64,000 nt of DNA from Selaginella moellendorffii (taxonomy: Eukaryota > Plantae > Lycopodiophyta), in contig NW_003314276.1 of assembly GCF_000143415.4 (NCBI RefSeq), positions 645,630-709,629 of the forward strand. Reading direction: 5' to 3'. Within the stretch, counting starts at the first letter, position 1. Each line of letters opens with the position of its first letter. The notes beneath the pieces are model-generated. The model was not told the DNA's origin. It did not search any database and worked only from the letters and a program-made list of their open reading frames with translations. Positions 1-52,606 of this stretch are shown here, piece after piece. The translations under genes and the position numbers were made by a program.

Positions 1-1285
1 ACATTCCTTTACAGGGTAATGTTCTTTGTATTTATAATTAAGAAACATGTTTATAATTTATAAACTTTCCTAAACATGTCTTAGTATATTCTAGTTTATT
101 TTACCATTTAATGGTTAATATTCAATAAGATCAATCTTGTTTTTATAAATTATAAACATGTTTATAATTATAAACTTTCATTTGATTAATTAGAACTATT
201 AAGTAAACCTGCAATGCACAGCAAATTAGTATTTATTTTACCATCTAATTTGATAAGATTAATTTTCAATTATAAATTGTAAAAATGTTTATAATTATTG
301 ATCAAATGGATTATTCAATAATACTAAACAGGAATGAATTGTTTCAAGTTTCTTGTCTTTTTCAATGATCTCCACCTTGCTCCATTTTAGAATGAGGTAG
401 AGGGCTATCTCTCTTTCCTTTACTTTGAAGCTCATGGTGAATAGCTTTCTTCTCTATAGCTAGAAAAAGTAATGAAGATCAAGTCATTAGTGTCTAAACC
501 CAGACACTGTTATTAGTGTTTGTAAGTCTTCATTCAAAAGTGGGATTAGGATTGTGACTATGACTTTTATCATCATGGTCCTAAAGCTCATTCTGTGTGG
601 GAGAGGACACACAAAATGTCATGGAAACAATACAGAATTTAGACAGTATTAAATGTCCAAACTTTTTGAAGGCTTTCCCTCTAGCTTGGGATGGAAAGGT
701 GGTGATGGTATATATGGACTTTTGAGCACTATTTGTAGGCTGACATTGAGAAATAAGTTACAAGCATAACACACATTTCGTTTTTGCAATGCTCATCTTA
801 GTTTGGTTTCGATTGATTGATCCCACCAATGAGTTTTTATTTTTTTTATTTATTTATTTCCTTTTCTTATCAGTTTCTGATGATAGAAACCGAAATGGCA
901 TTCCAGACCTTGCAACAAAATCTTTTAGAACAAACTTTAAGGCTAGTACATGCAAGAGTAATTACAAGCAATAGAAGAGAAATCAGGTCTTCAAACCATT
1001 TGAATCATAGTCTTTCATTAGATTGAGCATTTAAGATTCTCCTGGATATAAGATTGTAAAGAAAAATGTGAAATAAACTGATCTTGACTGGAAATCTTTG
1101 TTTGAGTTTTAAAGCATAATAATCTATTGCTCAAACGACTATTTTAGATATGATAATGTTTTAATTATCCATGTTGGATTATTTTTATAAAAAATATATA
1201 AAAAACCATTTGAAAGAAAACCAAGATATGAGTTTTTGAACAAAATTTACAAAGAAACATATAAATATAACCTTTGTGATTTTTT

Positions 1286-1600
1286 TGGTTTGCTTAAGCA
1301 AACCTATAGAGGGACTGGGATGGTAATGGATAAATCTAGAATATGCTTGAATATTCTAGAATATTCTACCATCTAATGGTTGTTATTCATTTAGATTAAT
1401 TTTGTATTTATAATTTATAAACATGTTTATAATTTATAAACTTTCTTAAACCCTTTCTAGTATATTCATTTTATTCTATCATCTAATGGTTGATATGTAG
1501 ATTAATCTTTTGTTTATAAATTACAAACATGCTTATAATTATAAACTTATTTGATTAATTAGATTAATAAGTAAGAATAACACTACTATTAAGCAAACCA
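1286..1600. repeat. AT-rich palindromic module, MITE-like (copies ~17601-17873, 29874-30188, 45919-46233; related pieces at 1-330, 8570-8810, 15900-16600)
   Basis: Ends tggtttgcttaa...ttaagcaaacca (12-bp inverted). Perfect 18-bp palindrome ggtttgcttaagcaaacc at 1287-1304. Recurrent aaacatgtttataatt(t)ataaac motif. Confidence 0.6.
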
Positions 1601-2327
1601 TACAATGTGTAGCAATTTATTTTAAGATTCAATTTCAAACTCATGTTATTGATGTGTTTATTTCAAGGGTTTATTACTAAGTTATTTTTGAATTAAGCTT
1701 TTATGAATGTTTTCTTCGTGTTTATAAAAGTGTTTATATTGCGCATTTTGATTACACGAGAAGAACTTAGATGCTTACTAGCAGCAGCTAGCAGCTCATA
1801 CAATACCTTGCCTAATGCATTGTAATCCAAAAAATGAAAATACCTCTAATGACTGTTGTAAATTCCAATCTAAGTTGTGTTTTCTTACAAAATCCCACCA
1901 GTGTTTCCGTTTGACACCTTTGTGTGAGCCCATTTGCCACAGCACCATGCTGCGTGCGTGTCCTTTTCGACCAGTTCTCCTCCCAGCTTTCAGGTAAAGT
2001 CTAAAGCAGAAGGATGACTATAGACGTGAGAAACTTACTTGATCAAGTGTTCTCTTGCACTGAAGTAGTAGGCTCCTCATTATCACTATAGGAAATTTTT
2101 TTCAATGATGCTTGACGGGACCTATAATTAAGCATCTATGGTTGGAATAAGTGGATTATGAACTCGACAAGTCATGTATCGCCACAAACGGTGCATGAAG
2201 GTCGCTAGAAACCAGTGGCTATTCAATTTTAAAATGGATCTGGGATTTCGTGGATGTTGTTTTGATTCTTGTGATACCAACAAGCGGCAGCAACTTCACA
2301 CAAGCAGAAACAACACTGCATCGCCCG

Positions 2328-3667
2328 CTAGACACCGATGTCGTGGTGAGCCAGGAGCTTGGTCATGGAAGATGTTTCTGTCATCTTATTGTGCTTGAGG
2401 AAGCGGGCCTTGAACTCATCATCATCAATGGGCGTTGCAGCCAGCCTTGCTGCAACCTGTTTTGGTGACAATCCGCGCTTGAGCAGGAAGCCCCGCCCCA
2501 ATCTTGACATCCTCGCCATGTAACAGCCGCGCCTCCCTGGCTCAAAATCCATTGGCGTCACGTAGGACACCGTCGACCCCGGGTCGCCGAGCATGCCCAA
2601 GTAGTTGCTCGCTTCAAGCTGCATCTGGAGGGAGGGAGGCTTGCCCTGCAGCTGCCGCACTACGAATTGCCTTGTCTATAAACCATGCATGAGCAACAAA
2701 AAAAATTTAAAAAAATCAGAACGCTGAAGGCTCACTCACATGATCCGCTATTCGGAAGAGGTTCGACAGGAAGCTGTGAATAGCCGAGCACAGCCGCGCG
2801 TCTAACACGGCCATGTAGACGTTCTCCATGTAAGGTAAGGGCACACAGTAATAAGAGAAGCAAGCCTTCCGCCGTCGCCCAGGCTCCAGCTCCACTGCAC
2901 TTACAGTCCCTGTTGTTTCATTTCTTTTTGTCAATATTTTCATCTGGCTGCGAGGGAAACTTCCATCGCTCGAGCGACTGCAGCGATGAGTTGCAGAGCG
3001 GGATATCATCAAGCAAGAAATCCAGCTTTGAGGACCTCACGTTTACAGCCTTTGGGAATTGAGCTTTATACCGTGCATATGGGTTTCTTTCCTCCAGGCC
3101 CTAAAGCAGCAAACTAAACTCGCATTACGTATTTCTTCACATACCACGCTTGCAGAGCTCCACCCTCCACGGAGAAGGCGAACTGTGCCTGAAGGCGGAG
3201 ATGACCCTCCGCAACTCGAGCGTGGCATCCACGGCTTCTCTCAAGCCCGGCGGCACGTCTGCAAGGTTATCCACTCCCTCCATAAGTTGGCCAACCCTGA
3301 AAAGGGACTGACGCCACGACCAAGTGCCCAGATTTCAGGTTCTTTCCAATGTGGAAGCTGTTTCCAAGAGCCATGGTTGCTCGAGAGCATTTTCCTGAGC
3401 GAAACCCAGGAAGTTCCGGAAGCTTGCGGAGATGGTGCACTCTTGCCGGGAGGCCCAATCCGTGGTTGCCAAGACCCTGGCGTGCGAGCTTTCACAACAT
3501 GCTGGCTCCACGATTTGGCGATTGGTTCCCTTCATACTGAAAAGTTTTTCTTCCAAGAATCTGGAAGCGAAGAGCCACGTCGATCTGATTGGAACTTCTT
3601 GCGGGATCCAATGTGTGAGCAGCAGCAGCACAGTGGCGATTGATGCGAGCGTCCACTCTGTTTCCAT
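2328..3667 (-). pseudogene. Unidentified multi-exon gene relic, copy 1
   Basis: GT-AG intron 2676-2739 joins ...LFRIADH to TRQFVVRQLQGK... in frame. Second short intron ~3101-3144. In-frame TGA at 3335-3337 plus frameshifts. Family not recognised. Confidence 0.6.
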
Positions 3668-3875
3668 TTCTCTTGGAAGTTGAAAAAAGAATGAAACTTT
3701 GCAGGCGGCCACATTGGTCTTCGCGAATCGCCGCTGCTCGTCTCAGTCTATGGCGAGGCCGAGGCCGCTGGATCGTTCTGTGCCCACTGCATTCATTTCT
3801 TCCAGTTCCTGGTGTGCGACGTGCTAAGATCAATGCCCGTTGGTTTGATGGCTCCCAGCTCTGAGCAAGGCGAGA

Positions 3876-4427
3876 GCTTCGATGCCACCCGCGTACCTGG
3901 TTGATCCTGAAGTCCCTTGAACCGTCAACCTTTGGCTCACCTGGAGAAAGATATAGGAATGTGTTACTTACCGGGAAAGAACAACCAAGCCATAGCCACG
4001 AAGACTACGAACAAAAGAAGCGAAGAACTGAGAGAACAAGGAACGAAAGCTACTCACCACATCGAGCGGGACGAAGATGAACTGCGAGACGACCGAGGGG
4101 AGAAAGCCCGCAGCTCCATTCGCGATGGCGGCGGCGGCGGTGTCTGGAAAGTTGAGCTTGGAAGTGAGGTTGAGCCGCCATCTGGGTCGCTTCGAGAGTT
4201 GTCAAGAACAGCACTCAACTGGAAACAGTGCCGGCAATCACGGTCCAAATCCCCGGTAGAGTCCTCTCACTCCATCCGTGCTAAGAATCGATCTGAGCTT
4301 TCATATTGCTCGCCTCATTCTCGTCTTGATCGGGTAGAGCGCCGCCGACAAGCCCGATATGTTCTCTCGAGATTCTACTCACTGTCACAGTTCGCACGAC
4401 ACCACCACTGGCGCCATCACGAGCCAT
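3876..4427 (-). pseudogene. Mitochondrial carrier (SLC25A44-like) 5' fragment, copy 1
   Basis: Manual translation across frameshifts: SGLSAALYPI-KTRM, ILSTDGVRGLYRGFG, VLFLTTLEAT, AAIANGAAGFLPSVVSQFIFVPLDV|VSQRLTVQG..RYAGGIEA. Carrier signature PLDVVSQRL is split by GT-AG intron 3941-4057. Confidence 0.85.
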
Positions 4428-4942
4428 GGTGACAGACAGGGCTTCAACGACGAGGTCCTGCCAGAAAAGATCACCCATTAACGGAGGAAAGTGGAGAGAA
4501 AGTTGGATCACATACTTGTGTTTCTTGTTTGCTCATTCCTGGCCTCCACGCTTGATCGAGAAAGCCAAATATATATGTCGATCCAGCTTAGGCACGCGGA
4601 GTGAAGATCCACCGATTGGCACACCGAAGATGCTACGTTTGTCGTGTCCCAACCTCGGACGATCATACCAGCCTCGAGAAAGGAGCAAAAGCAATACAGA
4701 CTGTTTATATACATCAATCAAAGCTGCTGCTAAACAAAACCTTGTTCGAATATCTCTAACCAGCCCTAGAAACTCAAAATAATAAAATAGTGTTTTCGCC
4801 CATTCCAGCCTTGACAATTGCTTGTTTCACCCATAAGGACGAAGAAATCACGAGAACAATCCAGATCGGCAAATGTAGACATGAGATTTGCGATCCTGTA
4901 CCTACACGCGACCCAAAGGAAAAGATGTTCACATTCAGGATC

Positions 4943-5492
4943 TTACAATCTGAAGCAATTGCTAATCAAGTTGGCACAGCCTTTTCCGCAACAAGAATGC
5001 TTCCCAACACTCCGCAGTCCGACGAGCTCAAACAATGCCGACTCCTTTGCGAGCCGGCGAGCAGCGCCATCCGGGAGCTCTCTCGGCTGGCTCAATCTCC
5101 ACAGATCCAGCATCGAGCAGTAGTGTCTGGGCTGAGGCTTGAATCCACAGTCGTTGCTCATCGAAACGAGAACTCGCGTCCCTTGCCTGCGTGGCTGCAA
5201 GCAACCAAAGGCACTCACATACGCAACTTGGTCGGGGATCATCTCACGAAAGTGGTCAATCGCTTGAAATCACCGACGTCCACGACACAACGTTCGATGG
5301 GAGAACGGCACCAGGATGGAGTTCCAGGAGACGATGTCCCTCTCGGGCATGAGAGCGAGGATCTCCCAGATGCCCTTGTTGGGCATTCCCGCAAGGAGCG
5401 AGTTCAGCTCCATAGCTCGCACTCGGGCTCTTGACGCCCGTGTTCCAGGTCACAAAGCTGGCGCGCGACAACGAGGCCCAAGATGCTGCCAA
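4943..5492 (-). pseudogene. PLS-class pentatricopeptide-repeat gene fragment
   Basis: Frameshifted PPR motifs: FVTWNT, NVVSWTSVIS, PDQVAYVSA, SMSNDCGFKPQPRHYCSMLDL. Confidence 0.85.
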
Positions 5493-5684
5493 GAGCCCGA
5501 GGTCTCCTCCATAAGCTGCTTCTTAGTTTTTAGTTTTAAGAAAATGGAGGCCTCGGGCTCTTGGCTGTGGGGGATCAGCCCAAGCCACACTACATGCCCC
5601 CTGCCACGAATAACACGAGGTGGCGGCTCGATCCACCGTGGCTTGGATCAACGGTAACCATTCTCTTGTGCATCAAATTTTAGG

Positions 5685-5967
5685 AGGTAAATAACGTTCA
5701 ACAGTCGTATCTCAAGTTCATGTCCTTTGCCTACAGATGAATGCTTACTTGAACAATGCCGAAGAAGTACGATTGAAAACTGTCTTCTGGACGGAAATGA
5801 ACAAAGGAGACCTTCAGGTAGGCAGCTCACGTTTGTCCTGCCAGCACATTTTAAAACTCACAGCAAAAGCTGCACAAGCTGCTGCTCTGTCTGCAATTTC
5901 GTCTGGAACTGGATCCGCCGCTGACATCTCTGCTGCTGCTGCCGCTGCTGTTGCGAGCTCCAAAAGG
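5685..5967 (+). pseudogene. BRF1: BRF1 (TFIIIB subunit) C-terminal TBP-binding exons, convergent with each lipase (also ~9261-9536, 12911-13447, 21910-22126, 25381-25662, 34273-34555, 37849-38125, 41419-41695)
   Basis: AG|MNAYLNNAEEVRLKTVFWTEMNKGDLQ|GT then AKAAQAAALS...AAAAAVASSKR. Matches the plant Brf1 pattern YLxNxEExxxKxxxWxEMNKEYL..AAKEAAA, and is homologous to the longer BRF1 relic at 50.7-51.5 kb. Confidence 0.8.
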
Positions 5968-6475
5968 ATTGTGCATTTCCACGAAACAACTCTTGTTTGT
6001 TCCTCACGCCATTGCACTAGGAAGTATTGAAATAAGGCTTGCAATACAAAGCAAATTCAAAACCAGAGCAAACAACACAGTCCGCAACTGCCAGATACTC
6101 CTGCTATCATCGAGGAATCGGCCAACCCCATGCATCCAAACATGGCTCACTACAGCTACATAATCGATCTCCTCAGCTGCACCGCACACCCTTGTGGCCA
6201 AGGAGCTCAAGAAGGGAAACAATGCAAGCAAATTGTTTGTGTCATGGAATAGCAAAATGTAAAGTAAGTTTTCAAATCAAGATATTTACAAGATTCGGTC
6301 CAATGAACTTCAAGGAGGCTTCTCGAACCAAAACTCTATAGGCCATTGCAAGCGTGCCACCTTTCAGATATACGTGCCAAACAGAGCTTGGTCCTACTGA
6401 TTAGCGTGAGGCCTCCGTAAAAGAATGAGTTTGTAAAAGTCCACCACCGTGATCGTGATGGAAGAAAGACGGGCT

Positions 6476-7801
6476 CTACTGCTTGGTGTCCTTAAACCAC
6501 CAGTTTGCTGGAACTCCAAGCTCTGCCTTGAGATAGTCCGATCTCTTGTTCACCAGCGCGATATCCCGGGTGCCTGAGACACTGAAGGGCTTGCTCGGCC
6601 CTTGGTAGCCATCAACCAGGTGAAGCAAGGCCTCCAAGTTGTGCAGATCGGTCAAGCCACCATCTTCCCTCAGAAACGGAGAGATGTCGCTGCTGAGCTC
6701 AAACTCGGTGCCAACATGGGTGTAGGCCCATGGGAACCTGTGGAAGATGAGCGAGATGATGTCACAGCTGTCCTCGTTGACAATCACCCCTGGAACTTTG
6801 GGCACCAGGTCTGCGCCATTGCGTGTCTGGAGGACTTTGAGCCCGAGCTCGAGGCACCTGTTCTTGAAACCCCGGTTCCCAACTCGGGGTGCCGAGAACG
6901 TGAAGACGGACACCGGGGTATTGCTCCCGGGCAGCCCAAGCTCTGTCACGTCGTAGGCGCTGAGGAGTGCAAGCGCGCCACCCAGGCTGTGGCCCGTGAA
7001 CGTCATACTCAGCTGCTCGCCCTGGTAGAGCCCGACCAATCGCTTGATCTCCGAGTGGAGCTGCTGCCTCGCGCTCATCCCGGCCTGATCGCCGGGGACT
7101 GGAGACGTGTAGATGCTGAGAAATCCCGTCTCCACTTTCACGCCTTTGGTGTTGTGATCCGTGGGGTCGAGCCCGGTGGGGCGGAGGAGATCCTTGAGGT
7201 TCTCGATCCACTCGAGCTGCGTCACCGTCCCGCGCCAGGCCACCACAATGTCGCGGCGTCCCAACCGTCGGATGGCCTCGTCCGACGTGGCAACCGCCAC
7301 GAAGCCCATCCAGTTGGTGTCCGACGTCCACGAGTCGTCGCCGGGTTGGGCGTTGGAATTGGAGCGCTTGAAGAAGCTGGGCAAGCCCAGCTGCGATGTT
7401 GCGTAGAGATAGGCCGTGATTTCGTATCCCGTGCTTGGGAGTCCCACGGATTGGAGGAGCTCCTCCTTGGAGAACTTTGTGTCTCCACAGAATTCCGAGC
7501 CCTCGCTGTATTCGAAGCCGTCGTAGCAAGCCTGCGCGAATTCGCCGTATCGGATGATCTCCCGCCGGAGCCGCTTGTCGATGGAGGCGTTGGCGGGCGG
7601 GAGGAGCGGACTCCAGTGGCATGCATCCCGCCAGCCTGGGGTCAGCACCAGCTGCGTCTCCTCCAGCTCCACAACGCGCGCGCCATGACCATCTCCTTCA
7701 GATCTCTCCAACGTTCTTCTCTTGAATGAGAATGACAATGAATCTCCTTCTCTCTCCAACGTCCTTCTCTTGAATGACAGTGACAATGAAACTCGTTCCA
7801 T
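6476..7801 (-). CDS. Phospholipase A1, DAD1-like/PLA1-Igamma-like class 3 lipase, copy 1 (441 aa)
   Basis: Motifs LRREIIRYGEFAQACYD, NWMGFVAV, LGRRDIVVAWRGT, GHSLGGALA (Ser), DLVPKVPG (Asp), HNLEALLHLVDGY (His). First ATG is at 7801 in context gagatcATGG; the ORF track starts at an upstream TTG. Confidence 0.95.
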   Translation of the reverse strand: MERVSLSLSFKRRTLEREGDSLSFSFKRRTLERSEGDGHGARVVELEETQLVLTPGWRDACHWSPLLPPANASIDKRLRREIIRYGEFAQACYDGFEYSEGSEFCGDTKFSKEELLQSVGLPSTGYEITAYLYATSQLGLPSFFKRSNSNAQPGDDSWTSDTNWMGFVAVATSDEAIRRLGRRDIVVAWRGTVTQLEWIENLKDLLRPTGLDPTDHNTKGVKVETGFLSIYTSPVPGDQAGMSARQQLHSEIKRLVGLYQGEQLSMTFTGHSLGGALALLSAYDVTELGLPGSNTPVSVFTFSAPRVGNRGFKNRCLELGLKVLQTRNGADLVPKVPGVIVNEDSCDIISLIFHRFPWAYTHVGTEFELSSDISPFLREDGGLTDLHNLEALLHLVDGYQGPSKPFSVSGTRDIALVNKRSDYLKAELGVPANWWFKDTKQ

Positions 7802-7979
7802 GATCTCGATGCTCGCTCTGATGGGCTTGGACAATTGTTGATACGCCTATCGATCGATCAGCTCGTCCTTGACGAGTATGGTGTCAATGAATCAGATGAT
7901 CGCTTCCTAAGGAACTTCTCCCCTTGTTGTTTCTCCCTTCGTGTAGATTGCTGGTGGAATGGTGAGATTGTGGCAGAGG

Positions 7980-7986
7980 ATTTATA
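7980..7986 (-). promoter_or_regulatory. Putative TATA box of the lipase (same position in all 8 copies)
   Basis: ctgcTATAAATcctc on the - strand, ~180 bp upstream of the ATG; no upstream ATG in the intervening leader of copy 1. Confidence 0.6.
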
Positions 7987-8369
7987 GCAGTATCGCTTTC
8001 GAAGTTTGCCACCGGGTCAAAAGCATATACGAAATTCTCGCGTTGATCTCTTCAATTTCTTCTCGAATGGGAAGCATAATAGTCAAAGTTCAAACCACCA
8101 GGGTCAACTATAGACAAGGAGGTATCGCGTCTTTGACCAGCAGACTTTCACTGAACTTTCACCTCTCATCCGTCCAGTAAAGCAACAAGTTGAGAGGTCG
8201 GGATCAGTGTTCTCCTCCTTTTCACCTGGTGATCAAAGGTTTAGATTGGAAGTCTTGACGCCAGGTTTCCTTGACGAATTGCCCAGAGTCTCGATCAAGG
8301 AAAGGCTCCCAAGAGTGGCGCCATCACACTCTGGGGCCACCACACTCTTGGAATCCCTGGCTGCTGCTG

Positions 8370-8555
8370 GCGATCGGGCACATGTGAACAATGAGATGGA
8401 CACAGATGGATCCGACCTGGCAGGAAGAATGGATGCAGGGGCAAAAAAAGTGGTGGGGAAGAGGATTGGCTTGGAACGGTGCAACGCGCAATGATCAAAA
8501 TCACGGTGAGGGTTTTGACTCAGCCTGGGCTTATGCCCATTTTAGAACCGCTACA
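8370..8555 (-). mobile_element. Related element remnant upstream of lipase promoters in short spacers (also ~12.0, 24.6, 37.1, 40.7 kb)
   Basis: gcccattttagaaccgctaca is the reverse complement of the 12925 terminus and is again followed by ACGT. Inner boundary uncertain. Confidence 0.6.
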
Positions 8556-8819
8556 ACGTTTCTAATATTTACTGGTTTGCTTAAAATGTAATTAGATATA
8601 CTTATTAATATTAATATTTAATTAGATTAATCTTGTATTTATAATAATTTATGGTTTGCTTAAGCAAAAGTGAAATATATTTAATTCTACCAAATAATTG
8701 TTATTCATTTAGATTAATCTTGCATTTATAATTTCCAAACATGTTTATAATTTATAACTTTCCTAAACTCTTTATAATTTATTTTTGGTGTGCTTAAGCA
8801 AACTTGTAGGGATATACCA

Positions 8820-9198
8820 CCACAGATCCAGCATCGAGCAGTAGTGTCTGGGCTGAGGCTTGAATCCACAGTCATTGCTCATCGAAACGAGAACTCGCGT
8901 CCCTTGCCTGCGTGGCTGCAAGCAACCAAAGCACTCACATACGCAACTTGGTCGGGGATCATCTCACGAAAGCGGTCAATCGCTTGCATCGGAATGACTA
9001 CATGCAGAGATCACTGATGTCCACGACACAACGTTCGATGGGAGAATGGTGCCAGGATGGAGTTCCAGGAAACGATGTTCCTCTCCCAGATGCCCTTGTT
9101 GGGCATTCCCCCAGCTCCATAGCTCGCACTCGGGCTCTTGACGCTGTGTTCCAGGTCACAAAGCTGGTGCACAACAACGAGGCCCAAGATGCTGCCAA
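8820..9198 (-). pseudogene. PLS-PPR fragment, short-spacer version (also 24940-25318, 37408-37786, 40978-41356)
   Basis: Truncated homolog of 5100-5492. Confidence 0.75.
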
Positions 9199-10039
9199 GA
9201 GCCCGAGGTCTCCTCCATAAGCTGCTTCTTAGTTTTTAGTTTTAAGAAAATGGAGGCCTCGTTCAACAGTCGTATCTCAAGTTCATGTATTTTGCCTACA
9301 GATGAATGCTTACTTGAACAATGCCGCAATTGAAAACTGTCTTCTGGACGGAAATGAACAAAGGAGACCTTCAGGTAGGCAGCTCACGTTTGTCCTGCCA
9401 GCACATTTTCAAACTCAAAGCAATAGCTGCAAGCAAAAGTTGCACAAGCTGCTGCTCTGTCTGCAATTTCGTCTGGAACTGGATCCGCCGCTGACATTTC
9501 TGCTGCTGCTGCAGCTGCTGTTGCGAGCTCCAAAAAGTTTGTGCATTTCCACGAAGCAACTCTTGTTTGTTCCTCACGCCATTGCACTAGGAAGTATTGA
9601 AATAAGGCTTGCAATACAAAGCAAATTCAAAACCAGAGCAAACAACACAGTCCGCAACTGCCAGATACTCCTGCTATCATCGAGGAATCGGCCAACCCCA
9701 TGCATCCAAACATCGCTCACTACAGCTACATCATCGATCTCCTCAGCTGCACCGCACACCCTTGTGGCCAAGGAGCTCAAGAAGGGAAACAATGCAAGCA
9801 AATTGTTTGTGTCATGGAATAGCAAAATGTAAAGTAAGTTTTCAAATCAAGATATTTACAAGATTCGGTCCAATGAACTTCAAGGAGGCTTCTCGAACCA
9901 AAACTCTATAGGCCATTGCAAGCGTGCCACCTTTCAGAAATACGTGCCAGCTTGGTCCTACCGATCAGCGTGAGGCCTCCGTAAAAGAATGACTTTGTAA
10001 AAGTCCACCACCGTGATCGTGATGGAAGAAAGACGGGCT

Positions 10040-12701: not shown

Positions 12702-12924
12702 GAGCCCAAGGTCTCCTCCATAAGCTGCTTCTTAGTTTTTAGTTTTAAGAAAATGGAGGCCTCGGGCTCTTGGCTGTGGGGGATCAGCCCAAGAGACCAA
12801 AGCCTCATGCACCATACTACATGCCCCCTGCCACGTATAACACGAGGTGGTGGCTCGATCCACCGTGGCTTGGATCAACAGTAACCATTCTCTTGTGCAT
12901 CAAATTTTAGGAGGTAAATAACGT

Positions 12925-36389: not shown

Positions 36390-38633
36390 GATCTCGATGC
36401 TCGCTCTGATGGGCTTGGACAATTGTTGATACGCCTATCGATCGATCAGCTCGTCCTTGACGAGTATGGTGTCAATGAATCAGATGATCGCTTCCTAAGG
36501 AACTTCTCCCCTTGTTGTTTCTCCCTTCGTGTAGATTGCTGGTGGAATGGTGAGATTGTGGCAGAGGATTTATAGCAGTATCGCTTTCGAAGTTTGCCAC
36601 CGGGTCAAAAGCATATACGAAATTCTCGCGTTGATCTCTCCAATTTCTTCTCGAATGGGAAGCATAATAGTCAAAGTTCAAACCACCAGGGTCAACTATA
36701 GACAAGGAGGTATCGCGTCTTTGACCAGCAGACTTTCACTGAACTTTCACCTCTCATCCGTCCAGTAAAGCAACAAGTTGAGAGGTCGGGATCAGTGTTC
36801 TCCTCCTTTTCACCTGGTGATCAAAGGTTTAGATTGGAAGTCTTGACGCCAGGTTTCCTTGACGAATTGCCCAGAGTCTCGATCAAGGAAAGGCTCCCAA
36901 GAGTGGCGCCATCACACTCTGGGGCCACCACACTCTTGGAATCCCTGGCTGCTGCTGGCGATCGGGCACATGTGAACAATGAGATGGACACAGATGGATC
37001 CGACCTGGCAGGAAGAATGGATGCAGGGGCAAAAAAAGTGGTGGGGAAGAGGATTGGCTTGGAACGGTGCAACGCGCAATGATCAAAATCACGGTGAGGG
37101 TTTTGACTCAGCCTGGGCTTATGCCCATTTTAGAACCGCTACAACGTTTCTAATATTTACTGGTTTGCTTAAAATGTAATTAGATATACTTATTAATATT
37201 AATATTTAATTAGATTAATCTTGTATTTATAATAATTTATGGTTTGCTTAAGCAAAAGTGAAATATATTTAATTCTACCAAATAATTGTTATTCATTTAG
37301 ATTAATCTTGCATTTATAATTTCCAAACATGTTTATAATTTATAACTTTCCTAAACTCTTTATAATTTATTTTTGGTGTGCTTAAGCAAACTTGTAGGGA
37401 TATACCACCACAGATCCAGCATCGAGCAGTAGTGTCTGGGCTGAGGCTTGAATCCACAGTCATTGCTCATCGAAACGAGAACTCGCGTCCCTTGCCTGCG
37501 TGGCTGCAAGCAACCAAAGCACTCACATACGCAACTTGGTCGGGGATCATCTCACGAAAGCGGTCAATCGCTTGCATCGGAATGACTACATGCAGAGATC
37601 ACTGATGTCCACGACACAACGTTCGATGGGAGAATGGTGCCAGGATGGAGTTCCAGGAAACGATGTTCCTCTCCCAGATGCCCTTGTTGGGCATTCCCCC
37701 AGCTCCATAGCTCGCACTCGGGCTCTTGACGCTGTGTTCCAGGTCACAAAGCTGGTGCACAACAACGAGGCCCAAGATGCTGCCAAGAGCCCGAGGTCTC
37801 CTCCATAAGCTGCTTCTTAGTTTTTAGTTTTAAGAAAATGGAGGCCTCGTTCAACAGTCGTATCTCAAGTTCATGTATTTTGCCTACAGATGAATGCTTA
37901 CTTGAACAATGCCGCAATTGAAAACTGTCTTCTGGACGGAAATGAACAAAGGAGACCTTCAGGTAGGCAGCTCACGTTTGTCCTGCCAGCACATTTTCAA
38001 ACTCAAAGCAATAGCTGCAAGCAAAAGTTGCACAAGCTGCTGCTCTGTCTGCAATTTCGTCTGGAACTGGATCCGCCGCTGACATCTCTGCTGCTGCTGC
38101 AGCTGCTGTTGCGAGCTCCAAAAAGTTTGTGCATTTCCACGAAACAACTCTTGTTTGTTCCTCACGCCATTGCACTAGGAAGTATTGAAATAAGGCTTGC
38201 AATACAAAGCAAATTCAAAACCAGAGCAAACAACACAGTCCGCAACTGCCAGATACTCCTGCTATCATCGAGGAATCGGCCAACCCCATGCATCCAAACA
38301 TGGCTCACTACAGCTACATAATCGATCTCCTCAGCTGCACCGCACACCCTTGTGGCCAAGGAGCTCAAGAAGGGAAACAATGCAAGCAAATTGTTTGTGT
38401 CATGGAATAGCAAAATGTAAAGTAAGTTTTCAAATCAAGATATTTACAAGATTCGGTCCAATGAACTTCAAGGAGGCTTCTCGAACCAAAACTCTATAGG
38501 CCATTGCAAGCGTGCCACCTTTCAGATATACGTGCCAAACAGAGCTTGGTCCTACTGATTAGCGTGAGGCCTCCGTAAAAGAATGAGTTTGTAAAAGTCC
38601 ACCACCGTGATCGTGATGGAAGAAAGACGGGCT

Positions 38634-39959
38634 CTACTGCTTGGTGTCCTTAAACCACCAGTTTGCTGGAACTCCAAGCTCTGCCTTGAGATAGTCCGAT
38701 CTCTTGTTCACCAGCGCAATATCCCGGGTGCCTGAGACACTGAAGGGCTTGCTCGGCCCTTGGTAGCCATCAACCAGGTGAAGCAAGGCCTCCAAGTTGT
38801 GCAGATCGGTCAAGCCACCATCTTCCCTCAGAAACGGAGAGATGTCGCTGCTGAGCTCAAACTCGGTGCCAACATGGGTGTAGGCCCATGGGAACCTGTG
38901 GAAGATGAGCGAGATGATGTCACAGCTGTCCTCGTTGACAATCACCCCTGGAACTTTGGGCACCAGGTCTGCGGCATTGCGTGTCTGGAGGACTTTGAGC
39001 CCGAGCTCGAGGCACCTGTTCTTGAAACCCCGGTTCCCAACTCGGGGTGCCGAGAACGTGAAGACGGACACCGGGGTATTGCTCCCGGGCAGCCCAAGCT
39101 CTGTCACGTCGTAGGCGCTGAGGAGTGCAAGCGCGCCACCCAGGCTGTGGCCCGTGAACGTCATACTCAGCTGCTCGCCCTGGTAGAGCCCGACCAATCG
39201 CTTGATCTCCGAGTGGAGCTGCTGCCTCGCGCTCATCCCGGCCTGATCGCCGGGGACTGGAGACGTGTAGATGCTGAGAAATCCCGTCTCCACTTTCACG
39301 CCTTTGGTGTTGTGATCCGTGGGGTCGAGCCCGGTGGGGCGGAGGAGATCCTTGAGGTTCTCGATCCACTCGAGCTGCGTCACCGTCCCGCGCCAGGCCA
39401 CCACAATGTCGCGGCGTCCCAACCGTCGGATGGCCTCGTCCGACGTGGCAACCGCCACGAAGCCCATCCAGTTGGTGTCCGACGTCCACGAGTCGTCGCC
39501 GGGTTGGGCGTTGGAATTGGAGCGCTTGAAGAAGCTGGGCAAGCCCAGCTGCGATGTTGCGTAGAGATAGGCCGTGATTTCGTATCCCGTGCTTGGGAGT
39601 CCCACGGATTGGAGGAGCTCCTCCTTGGAGAACTTTGTGTCTCCACAGAATTCCGAGCCCTCGCTGTATTCGAAGCCGTCGTAGCAAGCCTGCGCGAATT
39701 CGCCGTATCGGATGATCTCCCGCCGGAGCCGCTTGTCGATGGAGGCGTTGGCGGGCGGGAGGAGCGGACTCCAGTGGCATGCATCCCGCCAGCCTGGGGT
39801 CAGCACCAGCTGCGTCTCCTCCAGCTCCACAACGCGCGCGCCATGACCATCTCCTTCAGATCTCTCCAACGTTCTTCTCTTGAATGAGAATGACAATGAA
39901 TCTCCTTCTCTCTCCAACGTCCTTCTCTTGAATGACAGTGACAATGAAACTCGTTCCAT
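38634..39959 (-). CDS. PLA1/DAD1-like lipase, copy 7
   Basis: Intact ORF, catalytic motifs present. Confidence 0.94.
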   Translation of the reverse strand: MERVSLSLSFKRRTLEREGDSLSFSFKRRTLERSEGDGHGARVVELEETQLVLTPGWRDACHWSPLLPPANASIDKRLRREIIRYGEFAQACYDGFEYSEGSEFCGDTKFSKEELLQSVGLPSTGYEITAYLYATSQLGLPSFFKRSNSNAQPGDDSWTSDTNWMGFVAVATSDEAIRRLGRRDIVVAWRGTVTQLEWIENLKDLLRPTGLDPTDHNTKGVKVETGFLSIYTSPVPGDQAGMSARQQLHSEIKRLVGLYQGEQLSMTFTGHSLGGALALLSAYDVTELGLPGSNTPVSVFTFSAPRVGNRGFKNRCLELGLKVLQTRNAADLVPKVPGVIVNEDSCDIISLIFHRFPWAYTHVGTEFELSSDISPFLREDGGLTDLHNLEALLHLVDGYQGPSKPFSVSGTRDIALVNKRSDYLKAELGVPANWWFKDTKQ

Positions 39960-42203
39960 GATCTCGATGCTCGCTCTGATGGGCTTGGACAATTGTTGAT
40001 ACGCCTATCGATCGATCAGCTCGTCCTTGACGAGTATGGTGTCAATGAATCAGATGATCGCTTCCTAAGGAACTTCTCCCCTTGTTGTTTCTCCCTTCGT
40101 GTAGATTGCTGGTGGAATGGTGAGATTGTGGCAGAGGATTTATAGCAGTATCGCTTTCGAAGTTTGCCACCGGGTCAAAAGCATATACGAAATTCTCGCG
40201 TTGATCTCTTCAATTTCTTCTCGAATGGGAAGCATAATAGTCAAAGTTCAAACCACCAGGGTCAACTATAGACAAGGAGGTATCGCGTCTTTGACCAGCA
40301 GACTTTCACTGAACTTTCACCTCTCATCCGTCCAGTAAAGCAACAAGTTGAGAGGTCGGGATCAGTGTTCTCCTCCTTTTCACCTGGTGATCAAAGGTTT
40401 AGATTGGAAGTCTTGACGCCAGGTTTCCTTGACGAATTGCCCAGAGTCTCGATCAAGGAAAGGCTCCCAAGAGTGGCGCCATCACACTCTGGGGCCACCA
40501 CACTCTTGGAATCCCTGGCTGCTGCTGGCGATCGGGCACATGTGAACAATGAGATGGACACAGATGGATCCGACCTGGCAGGAAGAATGGATGCAGGGGC
40601 AAAAAAAGTGGTGGGGAAGAGGATTGGCTTGGAACGGTGCAACGCGCAATGATCAAAATCACGGTGAGGGTTTTGACTCAGCCTGGGCTTATGCCCATTT
40701 TAGAACCGCTACAACGTTTCTAATATTTACTGGTTTGCTTAAAATGTAATTAGATATACTTATTAATATTAATATTTAATTAGATTAATCTTGTATTTAT
40801 AATAATTTATGGTTTGCTTAAGCAAAAGTGAAATATATTTAATTCTACCAAATAATTGTTATTCATTTAGATTAATCTTGCATTTATAATTTCCAAACAT
40901 GTTTATAATTTATAACTTTCCTAAACTCTTTATAATTTATTTTTGGTGTGCTTAAGCAAACTTGTAGGGATATACCACCACAGATCCAGCATCGAGCAGT
41001 AGTGTCTGGGCTGAGGCTTGAATCCACAGTCATTGCTCATCGAAACGAGAACTCGCGTCCCTTGCCTGCGTGGCTGCAAGCAACCAAAGCACTCACATAC
41101 GCAACTTGGTCGGGGATCATCTCACGAAAGCGGTCAATCGCTTGCATCGGAATGACTACATGCAGAGATCACTGATGTCCACGACACAACGTTCGATGGG
41201 AGAATGGTGCCAGGATGGAGTTCCAGGAAACGATGTTCCTCTCCCAGATGCCCTTGTTGGGCATTCCCCCAGCTCCATAGCTCGCACTCGGGCTCTTGAC
41301 GCTGTGTTCCAGGTCACAAAGCTGGTGCACAACAACGAGGCCCAAGATGCTGCCAAGAGCCCGAGGTCTCCTCCATAAGCTGCTTCTTAGTTTTTAGTTT
41401 TAAGAAAATGGAGGCCTCGTTCAACAGTCGTATCTCAAGTTCATGTATTTTGCCTACAGATGAATGCTTACTTGAACAATGCCGCAATTGAAAACTGTCT
41501 TCTGGACGGAAATGAACAAAGGAGACCTTCAGGTAGGCAGCTCACGTTTGTCCTGCCAGCACATTTTCAAACTCAAAGCAATAGCTGCAAGCAAAAGTTG
41601 CACAAGCTGCTGCTCTGTCTGCAATTTCGTCTGGAACTGGATCCGCCGCTGACATTTCTGCTGCTGCTGCAGCTGCTGTTGCGAGCTCCAAAAAGTTTGT
41701 GCATTTCCACGAAGCAACTCTTGTTTGTTCCTCACGCCATTGCACTAGGAAGTATTGAAATAAGGCTTGCAATACAAAGCAAATTCAAAACCAGAGCAAA
41801 CAACACAGTCCGCAACTGCCAGATACTCCTGCTATCATCGAGGAATCGGCCAACCCCATGCATCCAAACATCGCTCACTACAGCTACATCATCGATCTCC
41901 TCAGCTGCACCGCACACCCTTGTGGCCAAGGAGCTCAAGAAGGGAAACAATGCAAGCAAATTGTTTGTGTCATGGAATAGCAAAATGTAAAGTAAGTTTT
42001 CAAATCAAGATATTTACAAGATTCGGTCCAATGAACTTCAAGGAGGCTTCTCGAACCAAAACTCTATAGGCCATTGCAAGCGTGCCACCTTTCAGATATA
42101 CGTGCCAAACAGAGCTTGGTCCTACTGATTAGCGTGAGGCCTCCGTAAGAGAATGAGTTTGTAAAAGTCCACCACTGTGATCGTGATGGAAGAAAGACGG
42201 GCT

Positions 42204-43529
42204 CTACTGCTTGGTGTCCTTAAACCACCAGTTTGCTGGAACTCCAAGCTCTGCCTTGAGATAGTCCGATCTCTTGTTCACCAGCGCGATATCCCGGGTG
42301 CCTGAGACACTGAAGGGCTTGCTCGGCCCTTGGTAGCCATCAACCAGGTGAAGCAAGGCCTCCAAGTTGTGCAGATCGGTCAAGCCACCATCTTCCCTCA
42401 GAAACGGAGAGATGTCGCTGCTGAGCTCAAACTCGGTGCCAACATGGGTGTAGGCCCATGGGAACCTGTGGAAGATGAGCGAGATGATGTCACAGCTGTC
42501 CTCGTTGACAATCACCCCTGGAACTTTGGGCACCAGGTCTGCGCCATTGCGTGTCTGGAGGACTTTGAGCCCGAGCTCGAGGCACCTGTTCTTGAAACCC
42601 CGGTTCCCAACTCGGGGTGCCGAGAACGTGAAGACGGACACCGGGGTATTGCTCCCGGGCAGCCCAAGCTCTGTCACGTCGTAGGCGCTGAGGAGTGCAA
42701 GCGCGCCACCCAGGCTGTGGCCCGTGAACGTCATACTCAGCTGCTCGCCCTGGTAGAGCCCGACCAATCGCTTGATCTCCGAGTGGAGCTGCTGCCTCGT
42801 GCTCATCCCGGCCTGATCGCCGGGGACTGGAGACGTGTAGATGCTGAGAAATCCCGTCTCCACTTTCACGCCTTTGGTGTTGTGATCCGTGGGGTCGAGC
42901 CCGGTGGGGCGGAGGAGATCCTTGAGGTTCTCGATCCACTCGAGCTGCGTCACCGTCCCGCGCCAGGCCACCACAATGTCGCGGCGTCCCAACCGTCGGA
43001 TGGCCTCGTCCGACGTGGCAACCGCCACGAAGCCCATCCAGTTGGTGTCCGACGTCCACGAGTCGTCGCCGGGTTGGGCGTTGGAATTGGAGCGCTTGAA
43101 GAAGCTGGGCAAGCCCAGCTGCGATGTTGCGTAGAGATAGGCCGTGATTTCGTATCCCGTGCTTGGGAGTCCCACGGATTGGAGGAGCTCCTCCTTGGAG
43201 AACTTTGTGTCTCCACAGAATTCCGAGCCCTCGCTGTACTCGAAGCCGTCGTAGCAAGCCTGGGCGAATTCGCCGTATCGGATGATCTCCCGCCGGAGCC
43301 GCTCGTCGATGGAGGCGTTGGCGGGCGGGAGGAGCGGACTCCAGTGGCATGCATCCCGCCAGCCTGAGCTCAGCGCCAACTGCGTCTCCTCCAGCTCCAC
43401 AACGCGCGCGCCATGACCATCTCCTTCAGATCTCTCCAACGTTCTTCTCTTGAATGAGAATGACAATGAATCTCCTTCTCTCTCCAACGTCATTCTCTTG
43501 AATGACAGTGACAATGAAACTCGTTCCAT
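42204..43529 (-). CDS. PLA1/DAD1-like lipase, copy 8
   Basis: Intact 441-aa ORF from ATG. Loss of the upstream TTG in this copy supports the ATG start in all copies. Confidence 0.94.
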   Translation of the reverse strand: MERVSLSLSFKRMTLEREGDSLSFSFKRRTLERSEGDGHGARVVELEETQLALSSGWRDACHWSPLLPPANASIDERLRREIIRYGEFAQACYDGFEYSEGSEFCGDTKFSKEELLQSVGLPSTGYEITAYLYATSQLGLPSFFKRSNSNAQPGDDSWTSDTNWMGFVAVATSDEAIRRLGRRDIVVAWRGTVTQLEWIENLKDLLRPTGLDPTDHNTKGVKVETGFLSIYTSPVPGDQAGMSTRQQLHSEIKRLVGLYQGEQLSMTFTGHSLGGALALLSAYDVTELGLPGSNTPVSVFTFSAPRVGNRGFKNRCLELGLKVLQTRNGADLVPKVPGVIVNEDSCDIISLIFHRFPWAYTHVGTEFELSSDISPFLREDGGLTDLHNLEALLHLVDGYQGPSKPFSVSGTRDIALVNKRSDYLKAELGVPANWWFKDTKQ

Positions 43530-46500
43530 GATCTCGATGCTCGCTCTGATGGGCTTGGACAGTTTTTGATATGCCTATCGATCGATCAGCTCCTCCTTGG
43601 CGAGTATGGTTGCAATGAATCAGATTATCGGCTTCCTAAAGAACTTCTCCCCTTGTTGTTTCTCCCTTCGTGTAGATTGCTGGTGGAATGGTGAGATTGT
43701 GGCAGAGGATTTATAGCAGTATCGCTTTCGAAGTTTGCCACCGGGTCAAAAGCATATACGAAATTCTCGCGTTGATCTCTTCAATTTCTTCTCGAATGGG
43801 AAGCATAATAGTCAAAGTTCAAACCACCAGGGTCAGCCAAAGGAGCTATCGCGTCTTTGACCAGCAGACTTTCACTGAACTTTCACTCTTGACTCTCATC
43901 CCTTCAGTAAAGCAGTTGCGAGGTCGGGATCACTGTTCTCCTCCTCACTTGGCGATCATAGGTGTAAATTGGAAGTCCCGACACCAGATACTTAATCATC
44001 TCCTTGACGAACAGCCTAGAGTCTTGATCAAGGAAAGGCTCCAAGAGCAGCCCATCACACTCTAGGGCCACCACACTCTTGGAATCCTTGGCTGCTGCTA
44101 GTGATTATGGGTAGACAACAATGAGCCTGTAGAACAAAGTGAGGTGGCATATGTGGATGATGAGAAGGTGCATCGTTAAGCCAATTTTTATACTTCTTAA
44201 TATTAATATTTAATTATATTAATTTTTTATTTATATTAATTTATTTTTTACATAAGCAAAAGTGAAATATATTAAGTTCTACAAAATAATTGTTATTCAT
44301 TTAGATTAATCTTGTATCTAAACATATTTATAATCTATAACTTTCCTAAACACTTTCTAGTATATTTTTGGTTTGCTTAAGGTGTGTAGTGGATATACCT
44401 CGAATATACTTGGATATTCTAGATTATTTACTATCTAACCATTACTCTTTTCTAACTCAATTACGCTTTCAACCATTGTTTAACTGTAGGTACATGCATT
44501 CAATGGAGTATGTTGTGTCAGGAACAGCTGATGGAGTCATTTGCATCAATACTACAGCTCACACTGGACAATTGGGTTTAGTACAGCAGCAAAAGTAGTG
44601 GGAGGTATCAATGCGATTCAAGTTTCTCGTTTGACATTCCTTTACAGGGTAATGTTCTTTGTATTTATAATTAAGAAACATGTTTATAATTTATAAACTT
44701 TCCTAAACATGTCTTAGTATATTCTAGTTTATTTTACCATTTAATGGTTAATATTCAATAAGATCAATCTTGTTTTTATAAATTATAAACATGTTTATAA
44801 TTATAAACTTTCATTTGATTAATTAGAACTATTAAGTAAACCTGCAATGCACAGCAAATTAGTATTTATTTTACCATCTAATTTGATAAGATTAATTTTC
44901 AATTATAAATTGTAAAAATGTTTATAATTATTGATCAAATGGATTATTCAATAATACTAAACAGGAATGAATTGTTTCAAGTTTCTTGTCTTTTTCAATG
45001 ATCTCCACCTTGCTCCATTTTAGAATGAGGTAGAGGGCTATCTCTCTTTCCTTTACTTTGAAGCTCATGGTGAATAGCTTTCTTCTCTATAGCTAGAAAA
45101 AGTAATGAAGATCAAGTCATTAGTGTCTAAACCCAGACACTGTTATTAGTGTTTGTAAGTCTTCATTCAAAAGTGGGATTAGGATTGTGACTATGACTTT
45201 TATCATCATGGTCCTAAAGCTCATTCTGTGTGGGAGAGGACACACAAAATGTCATGGAAACAATACAGAATTTAGACAGTATTAAATGTCCAAACTTTTT
45301 GAAGGCTTTCCCTCTAGCTTGGGATGGAAAGGTGGTGATGGTATATATGGACTTTTGAGCACTATTTGTAGGCTGACATTGAGAAATAAGTTACAAGCAT
45401 AACACACATTTCGTTTTTGCAATGCTCATCTTAGTTTGGTTTCGATTGATTGATCCCACCAATGAGTTTTTATTTTTTTTATTTATTTATTTCCTTTTCT
45501 TATCAGTTTCTGATGATAGAAACCGAAATGGCATTCCAGACCTTGCAACAAAATCTTTTAGAACAAACTTTAAGGCTAGTACATGCAAGAGTAATTACAA
45601 GCAATAGAAGAGAAATCAGGTCTTCAAACCATTTGAATCATAGTCTTTCATTAGATTGAGCATTTAAGATTCTCCTGGATATAAGATTGTAAAGAAAAAT
45701 GTGAAATAAACTGATCTTGACTGGAAATCTTTGTTTGAGTTTTAAAGCATAATAATCTATTGCTCAAACGACTATTTTAGATATGATAATGTTTTAATTA
45801 TCCATGTTGGATTATTTTTATAAAAAATATATAAAAAACCATTTGAAAGAAAACCAAGATATGAGTTTTTGAACAAAATTTACAAAGAAACATATAAATA
45901 TAACCTTTGTGATTTTTTTGGTTTGCTTAAGCAAACCTATAGAGGGACTGGGATGGTAATGGATAAATCTAGAATATGCTTGAATATTCTAGAATATTCT
46001 ACCATCTAATGGTTGTTATTCATTTAGATTAATTTTGTATTTATAATTTATAAACATGTTTATAATTTATAAACTTTCTTAAACCCTTTCTAGTATATTC
46101 ATTTTATTCTATCATCTAATGGTTGATATGTAGATTAATCTTTTGTTTATAAATTACAAACATGCTTATAATTATAAACTTATTTGATTAATTAGATTAA
46201 TAAGTAAGAATAACACTACTATTAAGCAAACCATACAATGTGTAGCAATTTATTTTAAGATTCAATTTCAAACTCATGTTATTGATGTGTTTATTTCAAG
46301 GGTTTATTTCTAAGTTATTTTTGAATTAAGCTTTTATGAATGTTTTCTTTGTGTTTATAAAAGTGTTTATATTGCACATTTTGATTAAACGAGAAGAACT
46401 TAGATGCTTACTAGCAGCAGCTAGCAGCTCATACAATACCTTGCCTAATGCATTGTAATCCAAAAAATGAAAATACCTCTAATGACTGTTGTAAATTCCA

Positions 46501-46599
46501 ATCTAAGTTGTGTTTTCTTACAAAGTCCCAACAGTGTTTCCGTTTGACACCTGTGTGTGAGCCCCATTTGCCACACCACCATGCTGCGTGCGTGTTCTC

Positions 46600-46873
46600 N
46601 NNNNNNNNNNNNNNNNNNNNNNNNNNNNNNNNNNNNNNNNNNNNNNNNNNNNNNNNNNNNNNNNNNNNNNNNNNNNNNNNNNNNNNNNNNNNNNNNNNNN
46701 NNNNNNNNNNNNNNNNNNNNNNNNNNNNNNNNNNNNNNNNNNNNNNNNNNNNNNNNNNNNNNNNNNNNNNNNNNNNNNNNNNNNNNNNNNNNNNNNNNNN
46801 NNNNNNNNNNNNNNNNNNNNNNNNNNNNNNNNNNNNNNNNNNNNNNNNNNNNNNNNNNNNNNNNNNNNNNNNN
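46600..46873. other. Assembly gap
   Basis: Run of N. Confidence 1.
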
Positions 46874-46961
46874 CTGGGATTTCGTGGATGTTGTTTTGAT
46901 TCTTGTGATACCAACAAGCGGCAGCAACTTCACACAAGCAGAAACAACACTGCATCGCCCG

Positions 46962-48095
46962 CTAGACACCGATGTCGTGGTGAGCCAGGAGCTTGGTCAT
47001 GGAAGATGTTTCGGTCATCTTATTGTGCTTGAGGAAGCGGGCCTTGAACTCATCATCATCAATGGGCGTTGCAGCCAGCCTTGCTGCAACCTGTTTTGGT
47101 GACAATCCGCGCTTGAGCAGGAAGCCCCGCCCCAATCTTGACATCCTCGCCATGTAACAGCCGCGCCTCCCTGGCTCAAAATCCATTGGCGTCACGTAGG
47201 ACACCGTCGACCCCGGGTCGCCGAGCATGCCCAAGTAGTTGCTCGCTTCAAGCTGCATCTGGAGGGAGGGAGGCTTGCCCTGCAGCTGCCGCACTACGAA
47301 TTGCCTTGTCTATAAACCATGCATGAGCAACAAAAAAAATTTAAAAAAATCAGAACGCTGAAGGCTCACTCACATGATCCGCTATTCGGAAGAGGTTCGA
47401 CAGGAAGCTGTGAATAGCCGAGCACAGCCGCGCGTCTAACACGGCCATGTAGACGTTCTCCATGTAAGGTAAGGGCACACAGTAATAAGAGAAGCAAGCC
47501 TTCCGCCGTCGCCCAGGCTCCAGCTCCACTGCACTTACAGTCCCTGTTGTTTCATTTCTTTTTGTCAATATTTTCATCTGGCTGCGAGGGAAACTTCCAT
47601 CGCTCGAGCGACTGCAGCGATGAGTTGCAGAGCGGGATATCATCAAGCAAGAAATCCAGCTTTGAGGACCTCACGTTTACAGCCTTTGGGAATTGAGCTT
47701 TATACCGTGCATATGGGTTTCTTTCCTCCAGGCCCTAAAGCAGCAAACTAAACTCGCATTACGTATTTCTTCACATACCACGCTTGCAGAGCTCCACCCT
47801 CCACGGAGAAGGCGAACTGTGCCTGAAGGCGGAGATGACCCTCCGCAACTCGAGCGTGGCATCCACGGCTTCTCTCAAGCCCGGCGGCACGTCTGCAAGG
47901 TTATCCACTCCCTCCATAAGTTGGCCAACCCTGAAAAGGGACTGACGCCACGACCAAGTGCCCAGATTTCAGGTTCTTTCCAATGTGGAAGCTGTTTCCA
48001 AGAGCCATGGTTGCTCGAGAGCATTTTCCTGAGCGAAACCCAGGAAGTTCCGGAAGCTTGCGGAGATGGTGCACTCTTGCCGGGAGGCCCAATCC
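46962..48095 (-). pseudogene. Unidentified multi-exon gene relic, copy 4, truncated by gap
   Basis: Near-identical to 2328-3461. Confidence 0.5.
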
Positions 48096-52560: not shown

Positions 52561-52606
52561 CTATAGGCAAAGGACATGAACTCAATTGAGAGAATGTTAG
52601 ATCACC

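Follow-up and report, generated by a model that had tools for sequence, protein, structure and literature searches.

How does a plant genome come to carry the same lipase gene several times in succession, together with intron-bearing pieces of genes that are unrelated to it? The question is raised by a 64,000-nt stretch of Selaginella moellendorffii DNA, which was analysed as a whole and is hereafter called the window, and of which positions 1-48095 are filled by a repeat array. The original prediction, made from the sequence before any database search, was that a gene-capturing transposable element, either a Helitron or a Pack-MULE, had built one composite cassette around an intact phospholipase A1 (PLA1) gene and that this cassette had been amplified head to tail, with lipase dosage as the driving force. 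The answer we propose, to which we give a probability of about 0.72, is a young, still-changing tandem array formed by ordinary unequal recombination, in which the lipase is held by selection. No published description of this array was found in our literature search.

Organization of the array

The period structure was deduced from self-BLAST comparisons, which delineate a nested head-to-tail array extending from base 1 to a gap at 48096. Two periods are combined in it: an inner one of 3565 bp (3.57 kb) is repeated inside outer units of 12.3-16 kb, of which 3.2 are present, and the outer units A, B and C contain three, two and three inner units, respectively. Amplification in tandem had been correctly predicted, but the repeated object is not a single cassette, the shorter period being nested in the longer one. 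The outer units, the assembly gaps and one inner junction are the following.

1..16282: outer unit A, with spacer S (1-2000), block K (2001-5090), PPR scrap P (5091-5694) and, after them, three lipase modules
16283..28600: outer unit B, 12.3 kb, with two lipase modules; its block K is about 96% identical to that of A
28601..44633: outer unit C, with three lipase modules
44634..48095: outer unit D, partial and A-type, broken at position 3461 (in unit-A coordinates) by a 100-N gap
46600..46873: assembly gap of 274 N, collinear, standing for 275 bp of spacer or of the edge of block K
48096..48195: assembly gap of 100 N (size unknown), which interrupts unit D and has a copia element on its far side
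8724..8819: inner-unit junction, where the beginning of the spacer, including one palindromic module, is fused bluntly to shortened PPR scrap P' at 8820

In unit-A coordinates, an outer unit opens with the AT-rich spacer (1-2000, GC content 0.29), followed by relic block K (3.1 kb) and PPR scrap P (0.6 kb), K and P forming together a 3.7-kb stretch of intron-bearing, frameshifted gene relics that is found in each outer unit. Two to three lipase modules of about 3.0 kb each come next and are separated from one another by a 96-bp piece of the spacer and the shortened PPR scrap P'. The inner unit consists of an intronless lipase gene, a PPR scrap and a BRF1 scrap, and the scraps of five or more other genes accompany the lipase in each large unit. 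The PPR and BRF1 scraps, predicted as parts of the cassette, occur in the inner lipase unit and in the large unit alike.

At the inner junction 8819/8820, the spacer meets the PPR scrap with 0-2 bp of microhomology, and a different second junction precedes module A3. A 242-bp insert that is unique to unit A lies at 12926-13167; it contains inverted copies of lipase-upstream sequence (matching 8523-8560 and 15845-15886) and is a small templated inversion at an inner junction. A GC-richer island of 200 bp separates the last lipase module from the spacer (16082-16282, also 28403-28600 and 44436-44633); it contains an exon-like open frame bordered by AG and GT, which may be a further gene relic.

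On the two sides of the 274-N gap, self-BLAST aligns the sequence to unit A at 1-1964 (99.5%) and 2240-3461 (99.9%); since these flanks are collinear with unit A and the 275 bp lost are non-coding, one side continues into the other and the gap affects no reading frame. Because the window opens inside the array and the 100-N gap closes it, both ends of the array lie out of view and the copies counted are a minimum.

The lipase genes

Eight lipase copies are present, all of them intronless, on the minus strand and 441 codons long. The original prediction that only the lipase stays intact is right in that seven of the eight copies are open and that constraint acts on the lipase alone, but copy A3 is interrupted by a premature stop.

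6479..7801, minus strand: lipase A1, intact, predicted 441-aa DAD1-like PLA1 with the GHSLGG serine motif
10043..11365, minus strand: lipase A2, intact
13945..15267, minus strand: lipase A3, pseudogene, codon 203 being an in-frame stop
22632..23954, minus strand: lipase B1, intact
26175..27497, minus strand: lipase B2, intact; coding sequence one difference from A1, flanks diverged
35067..36389, minus strand: lipase C1, intact
38637..39959, minus strand: lipase C2, intact
42207..43529, minus strand: lipase C3, intact

By its sequence, the product is predicted to be a DAD1-like phospholipase A1, a class 3 lipase. It matches Pfam Lipase_3 (PF01764) at 1e-34, its best solved relatives are the Arabidopsis PLA1-IIgamma structures (7x0c, 2yij; 1e-61 over about 390 residues), the GHSLGG motif is found in all eight copies, and the Asp and His positions are conserved in the alignment to 7x0c. 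The six lipase proteins that were checked are exact RefSeq proteins of S. moellendorffii, in a family named 'phospholipase A1-Igamma1/2, chloroplastic-like'. A 48-bp tandem repeat of two copies, located in the 5' coding region (7703-7798, also 11267-11362 and 15169-15264), encodes a duplicated 16-residue acidic/basic N-terminal motif, and the N-terminus, rich in acidic residues, is unlike a typical transit peptide, even though the RefSeq name contains the term 'chloroplastic-like'.

The lipase coding sequence is under purifying constraint. In the comparison of the eight copies, it shows 2.3% variable columns and 0 indels, against 9.7% variable columns and 13 indel events in the 0.8 kb downstream, and 12.3% and 29 in the 0.95 kb upstream. 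Among the lipase pairs whose synonymous proportion of differences (pS) is above zero, the ratio of the nonsynonymous to the synonymous proportion (pN/pS) is mostly 0.2-0.6 and reaches 0.73 at its highest. What the sequence shows is purifying constraint and no more; that lipase dosage drove the amplification, as the original prediction had it, would be a further supposition.

Could most of this amplification be an artefact of assembly, haplotypes or collapsed reads having been stitched in tandem? Such an origin would agree with the 99.9% identity of units A, C and D over block K and with the two N gaps in the last unit, but it agrees poorly with the private substitutions and indels that each unit carries and with unit B, which is 4% diverged and has another number of inner units. 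Furthermore, the lipase is not confined to the window. Its 90%-identity cluster has 20 members distributed over three scaffolds (of 2.68 Mb, which is the window's own, 2.90 Mb and 3.91 Mb), so that the amplification is not an artefact of one contig; a second scaffold encodes eight or more additional, distinct lipase proteins, and nothing in the window comes closer than 96% identity to a 216-aa lipase fragment of the window's own scaffold, which indicates more copies outside the window. We consider the artefact extremely improbable.

Exchange between the copies

The lipase modules adjacent to the spacer (A3, B2 and C3) diverge from each other by 0.6-2.9%, as compared with 3-5% from the internal modules of their own unit. 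That these three modules group together argues that the inner duplication is older than the copying of the outer units. A1 and B2 show 0 differences in the 200-bp windows covering 6462-7661 (26158-27358 on the B2 side) and 8-27 differences per 200 bp upstream, and this near-identity amid diverged flanks marks a conversion tract. Module C2 is chimeric, with an A2-like start followed by an A1-like sequence. The same is observed on a larger scale in unit C, whose left part matches A (99.2%) and whose right part matches B (98.3%); its block K, its scrap P and its first lipase module are 99.9% identical to those of A. For block K as a whole, A, C and D are mutually 99.9% identical and about 96% identical to B. 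The unit copies are mosaics of each other, a sign of unequal crossing-over or gene conversion. When lipase copies are compared, their synonymous divergence is 0-3%, against 7-12% in the adjoining non-coding DNA; the conversion tracts are suggested to centre on the lipase coding sequence.

The gene relics

Every exon or open stretch of the fragment block was searched singly, not as joined spliced protein models. The relics, together with the BRF1 pieces of the flank that are needed to understand them, are listed below.

2260..2327, minus strand: putative old relic of a BRF1 cyclin-repeat exon, matched at 78% identity by flank positions 51869-51936 in the same orientation
2331..2675, minus strand: coding-like relic, GC by codon position.57/.44/.71, lipase-like
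3140..3334, minus strand: second coding-like relic, GC by codon position.58/.51/.71
3850..4280, minus strand: possible SLC25A44-like mitochondrial-carrier relic, two exons, 117-nt GT-AG intron (4057-3941), two frameshifts
4383..4883, minus strand: proteasome beta-1 (PBA1) relic, equivalent to about residues 55-193 of 236, with internal deletions, a frameshift, a 58-nt GT-AG intron (4515-4458) and the donor kept at 4382
4946..5520, minus strand: PLS-type PPR relic, frameshifted, by PLS motif reading only
8820-9261, 12313-12921, 21437-21908, 24940-25381, 33679-34282, 37408-37849 and 40978-41419: shortened PPR copies P'
5682..5970, plus strand: putative BRF1 scrap with two exons, corresponding to the beginning of the TBP-binding domain, GT-AG introns 5689-5737 and 5819-5864
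50553..52000, minus strand: BRF1-like gene or relic that extends from cyclin-repeat exons as far as the TBP-binding domain and is nearest among the copies of the BRF1 scraps of the array
52179..52582: older third copy of the TBP-binding piece, 70% identical to the TBP-binding exons of the flank locus itself and upstream of them

The gene fragments had been predicted to be DNA-level pieces with GT-AG introns, and this is what is found in BRF1 (two introns), PBA1 and the carrier; because the introns are retained, the scraps are DNA-level copies.

Part of what had been described as a multi-exon relic without a name is newly identified here as a fragment of the proteasome beta-1 gene. The relic matches the spinach 20S beta subunit (PDB 7qve) at E 2e-4 and Pfam at E 0.27 only, all the matches listed by phmmer among 1.84 billion proteins carry the PBA1 exon, and a full-length plant PBA1 (about 236 residues) aligns in tblastn over its residues 55-220, across more than one exon, at E 1e-8 to 2.5e-17. 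As for its parent, phmmer yielded mispredicted fragments only and no Selaginella protein was present among the 120 seed-plant proteins listed by the word search. Across 620 bp of this relic, unit A is set apart from unit B by five deletions of 4-20 bp that arose independently, among them a 4-bp loss in an exon of each copy; such small deletions, arisen independently in each copy, indicate that the relics are decaying passengers. The rest of that multi-exon relic comprises at least two coding-like pieces, at 2331-2675 and 3140-3334, which are without a homologue in PDB, in the Atlas and in the word search of 63-201-aa proteins. For 2331-2675, a SUMO-like (PDB, E 0.09) and a HEAT-like (Atlas, under the recognition level) assignment were considered and rejected as weak and unconvincing.

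The identity of the carrier relic is proposed from the Atlas, where 29 of the 30 nearest clusters are Mito_carr (score 0.92, 169 shared features), and from motifs, Pfam and PDB being blank; the P-x-D motif followed by SQRL-VQG, around the intron, presumably fits the SLC25A44 subfamily. The PPR relic would be recognized by its motifs alone: its open stretches gave nothing in Pfam or PDB, and no tool confirmed it.

The putative BRF1 scrap heads every lipase module and is antisense to the lipase. Its assignment combines motifs with a sub-threshold match to the Brf1 TBP-binding domain (PF07741), the array and flank copies scoring 17.5-17.8 bits (E 0.004-0.005) where the cut-off is 25 bits; the PDB searches with the BRF1 pieces were blank. 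At 50652-50952, inside the BRF1-like locus of the flank, lies an inverted copy of the scrap, 92% identical and with the same introns. In this locus, we take the motifs to be those of cyclin repeat 2 of BRF1 and of the acidic stretch preceding the TBP-binding domain. The locus (50553-52600) looks incomplete, no zinc ribbon and no clear first cyclin repeat having been recognized in it; this, together with the second TBP-binding copy, means that it may be a relic and not a working BRF1 gene. Among the relics of the array, BRF1 is the only one to have a source visible nearby, in the 16-kb flank, in which BLAST and tblastx of the unit revealed no parent for the PPR, PBA1 and carrier relics.

Search for a transposable element

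Pack-MULEs are characterized by long terminal inverted repeats surrounding the captured fragments and by target-site duplications of 9-11 bp. The marks of Helitrons are a 5'-TC end, a 3'-CTRR end with a hairpin 10-12 bp upstream, and insertion between A and T (PMC3288121). A Rep/helicase gene in autonomous relatives and copies scattered over the genome are further traits of Helitrons. According to the original prediction, a non-autonomous element of one of these kinds would have captured exon-intron pieces together with the lipase, and the array would result from rolling-circle replication or from repeated local transposition. The gathering of five or more gene fragments within 3.7 kb, introns kept and mostly on one strand, is what such an element would be expected to leave; the AT-rich palindromic modules at the unit borders and the transposon-rich region would also suit it. 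Indeed, the gene-fragment Helitrons of maize (PMC3288121) and Pack-MULEs likewise hold adjoining exon-intron fragments of unrelated genes, mostly on one strand and without a transposase in the copy.

The defining termini of these elements were sought here and not found within view, and the copies are strictly local and tandem, in contrast to those of Helitrons and Pack-MULEs. No inverted repeat of at least 35 nt brackets any block or unit, the pairs that are seen being short AT-rich modules and small internal inversions. The scan of both strands of unit A for a GC-rich hairpin followed by CTRR-T returned 2 sites, against 0.9 in shuffled sequences; both are the same lipase-upstream sequence and neither is at a module border. 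No transposase, MuDR or Rep/helicase Pfam domain was detected in the open stretches of at least 28-30 aa of unit A (block K, spacer and flanks of the lipase modules). The absence of a transposase and of clear termini, already remarked in the original prediction, is confirmed by these domain, inverted-repeat and Helitron-end scans. Furthermore, neither block K nor the palindromic module has a copy in the 16-kb flank.

The palindromic modules themselves are of a particular kind. The spacer (1-2000) consists of reiterated modules of about 110 bp built around an 18-nt perfect AT-rich palindrome, which with its near-matches was found 32 times, 0.03 being expected, and always in the array. It is located in the spacer and, within each lipase module, at the end facing the spacer (1-2000, 8724-8782, 16004-16082); none is present in block K. 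The modules thus bound the lipase modules and do not separate the gene scraps, contrary to what had been predicted. The spacer was also considered as a small LTR-like (long-terminal-repeat) element, and this was rejected, its 180-bp direct repeats merely reiterating the AT module.

The nested periods, the varying number of inner units, the similarity that depends on position and the mosaic tracts all point to homologous unequal recombination and not to rolling-circle copying, and the BRF1 scraps have local sources of two ages, 92% and 78% identical. With chance-level ends, no terminal inverted repeats, a mosaic nested array and the 92% BRF1 copy next to it, the origin and amplification of the unit by a Helitron or a Pack-MULE are not supported by the sequence, and we hold them to be very unlikely.

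Origin of the repeat units

The model we favour, unequal recombination with selection on the lipase, would involve three steps. In the first, an ancestral segment comprising the spacer, the already dead fragment block, the BRF1 scrap and a DAD1-like PLA1 gene would have been duplicated head to tail. In the second, a stretch reaching from within the PPR scrap through the BRF1 scrap and the lipase into the start of the spacer would have been duplicated by an event of the illegitimate end-joining type, generating the 3.57-kb inner unit. In the third, misaligned homologous recombination and gene conversion would expand, contract and partly homogenize the array. Throughout, purifying selection would keep the lipase coding sequence, and the gene fragments would be passengers decaying by substitutions and small deletions. 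The fragment block itself would derive from the deletional decay of a duplicated neighbourhood or from patching during break repair, and not from a transposon; the inverted 290-bp BRF1 scrap, copied from the adjacent locus, hints at patching.

A different weight can be given to this last process. The fragment block would then have been patched by double-strand-break repair, through synthesis-dependent filler or replication template switching, before being amplified by unequal recombination: after breakage at the AT-rich palindromes, short pieces of neighbouring genes would have served as templates for the repair, in one orientation or the other. The 290-bp BRF1 scrap has the expected traits, being inverted with respect to its neighbours, beginning at an exon-intron border and having been copied from the adjacent locus, and so have the blunt junctions and the 242-bp insert with its inverted copies of nearby lipase-upstream sequence. 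The maize P1-wr locus combines, in the same way, filler DNA copied from nearby and tandem 12-kb repeats (PMC2686159), but the fragments of 300-600 bp observed here exceed most of the filler DNA reported, which measures 1-131 bp in the maize cases (PMC2686159), and, BRF1 aside, there is no donor with which junction microhomology could be compared. Patching as the principal source of the block seems unlikely to us. In its most specific form, the 3.7-kb block and the inverted BRF1 scrap would be the products of a transposase-free capture, breaks at the palindromes being repaired by copying hundreds of bases from other genes, introns included; we regard this idea as doubtful. Could the palindromic spacer nevertheless be a recurrent fragile site? 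If so, it would seed gene-fragment mosaics and set the breakpoints of the array duplications.

Four points weigh against unequal recombination as the sufficient explanation. The parents of the PPR, PBA1, carrier and coding-like relics were not located, and a distant, unlinked origin is possible for them. All the relics of the block except the 3' BRF1 scrap are on one strand, which is typical of Helitron cargo too. The ends of the array are out of view, so that terminal structures could lie beyond the sequence read. Finally, 7 kb of units A, C and D agree at 99.9% identity, and the order and number of the copies therefore depend on a hard assembly.

Comparison with known systems

The DAD1-like PLA1 class is linked to the release of lipids for oxylipin and jasmonate formation in seed plants. 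The lipase of the array shares with the Arabidopsis members PLA1-I, -II and -III (2yij, 7x0c, 7x0d; PMC9000616) the Lipase_3 domain, the GHSLG motif and the Asp and His residues, and differs from the Arabidopsis PLA1 proteins in its duplicated 16-residue acidic/basic N-terminal repeat. Whereas Arabidopsis has 12 dispersed members of the DAD1-like PLA1 family (PMC3223057), the Selaginella lineage possesses 20 or more near-identical copies in arrays.

The closest documented analogue of the array is maize P1-wr, which is made of eleven 12-kb head-to-tail repeats and has a chimeric neighbour produced by non-homologous end joining with filler DNA (PMC2686159). In both cases multi-kb genic units are arranged head to tail, kilobase polymorphism tracts are common to several copies and are attributed to unequal crossing-over and gene conversion, and illegitimate junctions create gene chimeras at the edges. 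The Selaginella array differs by its nested structure with two periods and by its passengers, remnants of at least five unrelated genes; what is amplified is a gene for an enzyme and not for a Myb regulator, and the array is known from its sequence alone.

The locus shows a compact lycophyte genome in the course of building and turning over a lineage-specific enzyme family. It also calls for caution in annotation, for mosaics of intron-bearing fragments can mimic the cargo of Helitrons or Pack-MULEs while being, as here, the passengers of unequal recombination. The relic copies, which are of different ages, could serve to measure the deletion rate of this genome.

The flanking region

The array sits in a transposon-rich neighbourhood. 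The retroelement that follows the 100-N gap is the following.

48196..50350, minus strand: Ty1/copia retrotransposon fragment (RVT_2)

In addition to this copia reverse-transcriptase fragment, the flank holds two gypsy-type elements (54687-56056 and 61900-64000), one of which is very AT-rich.

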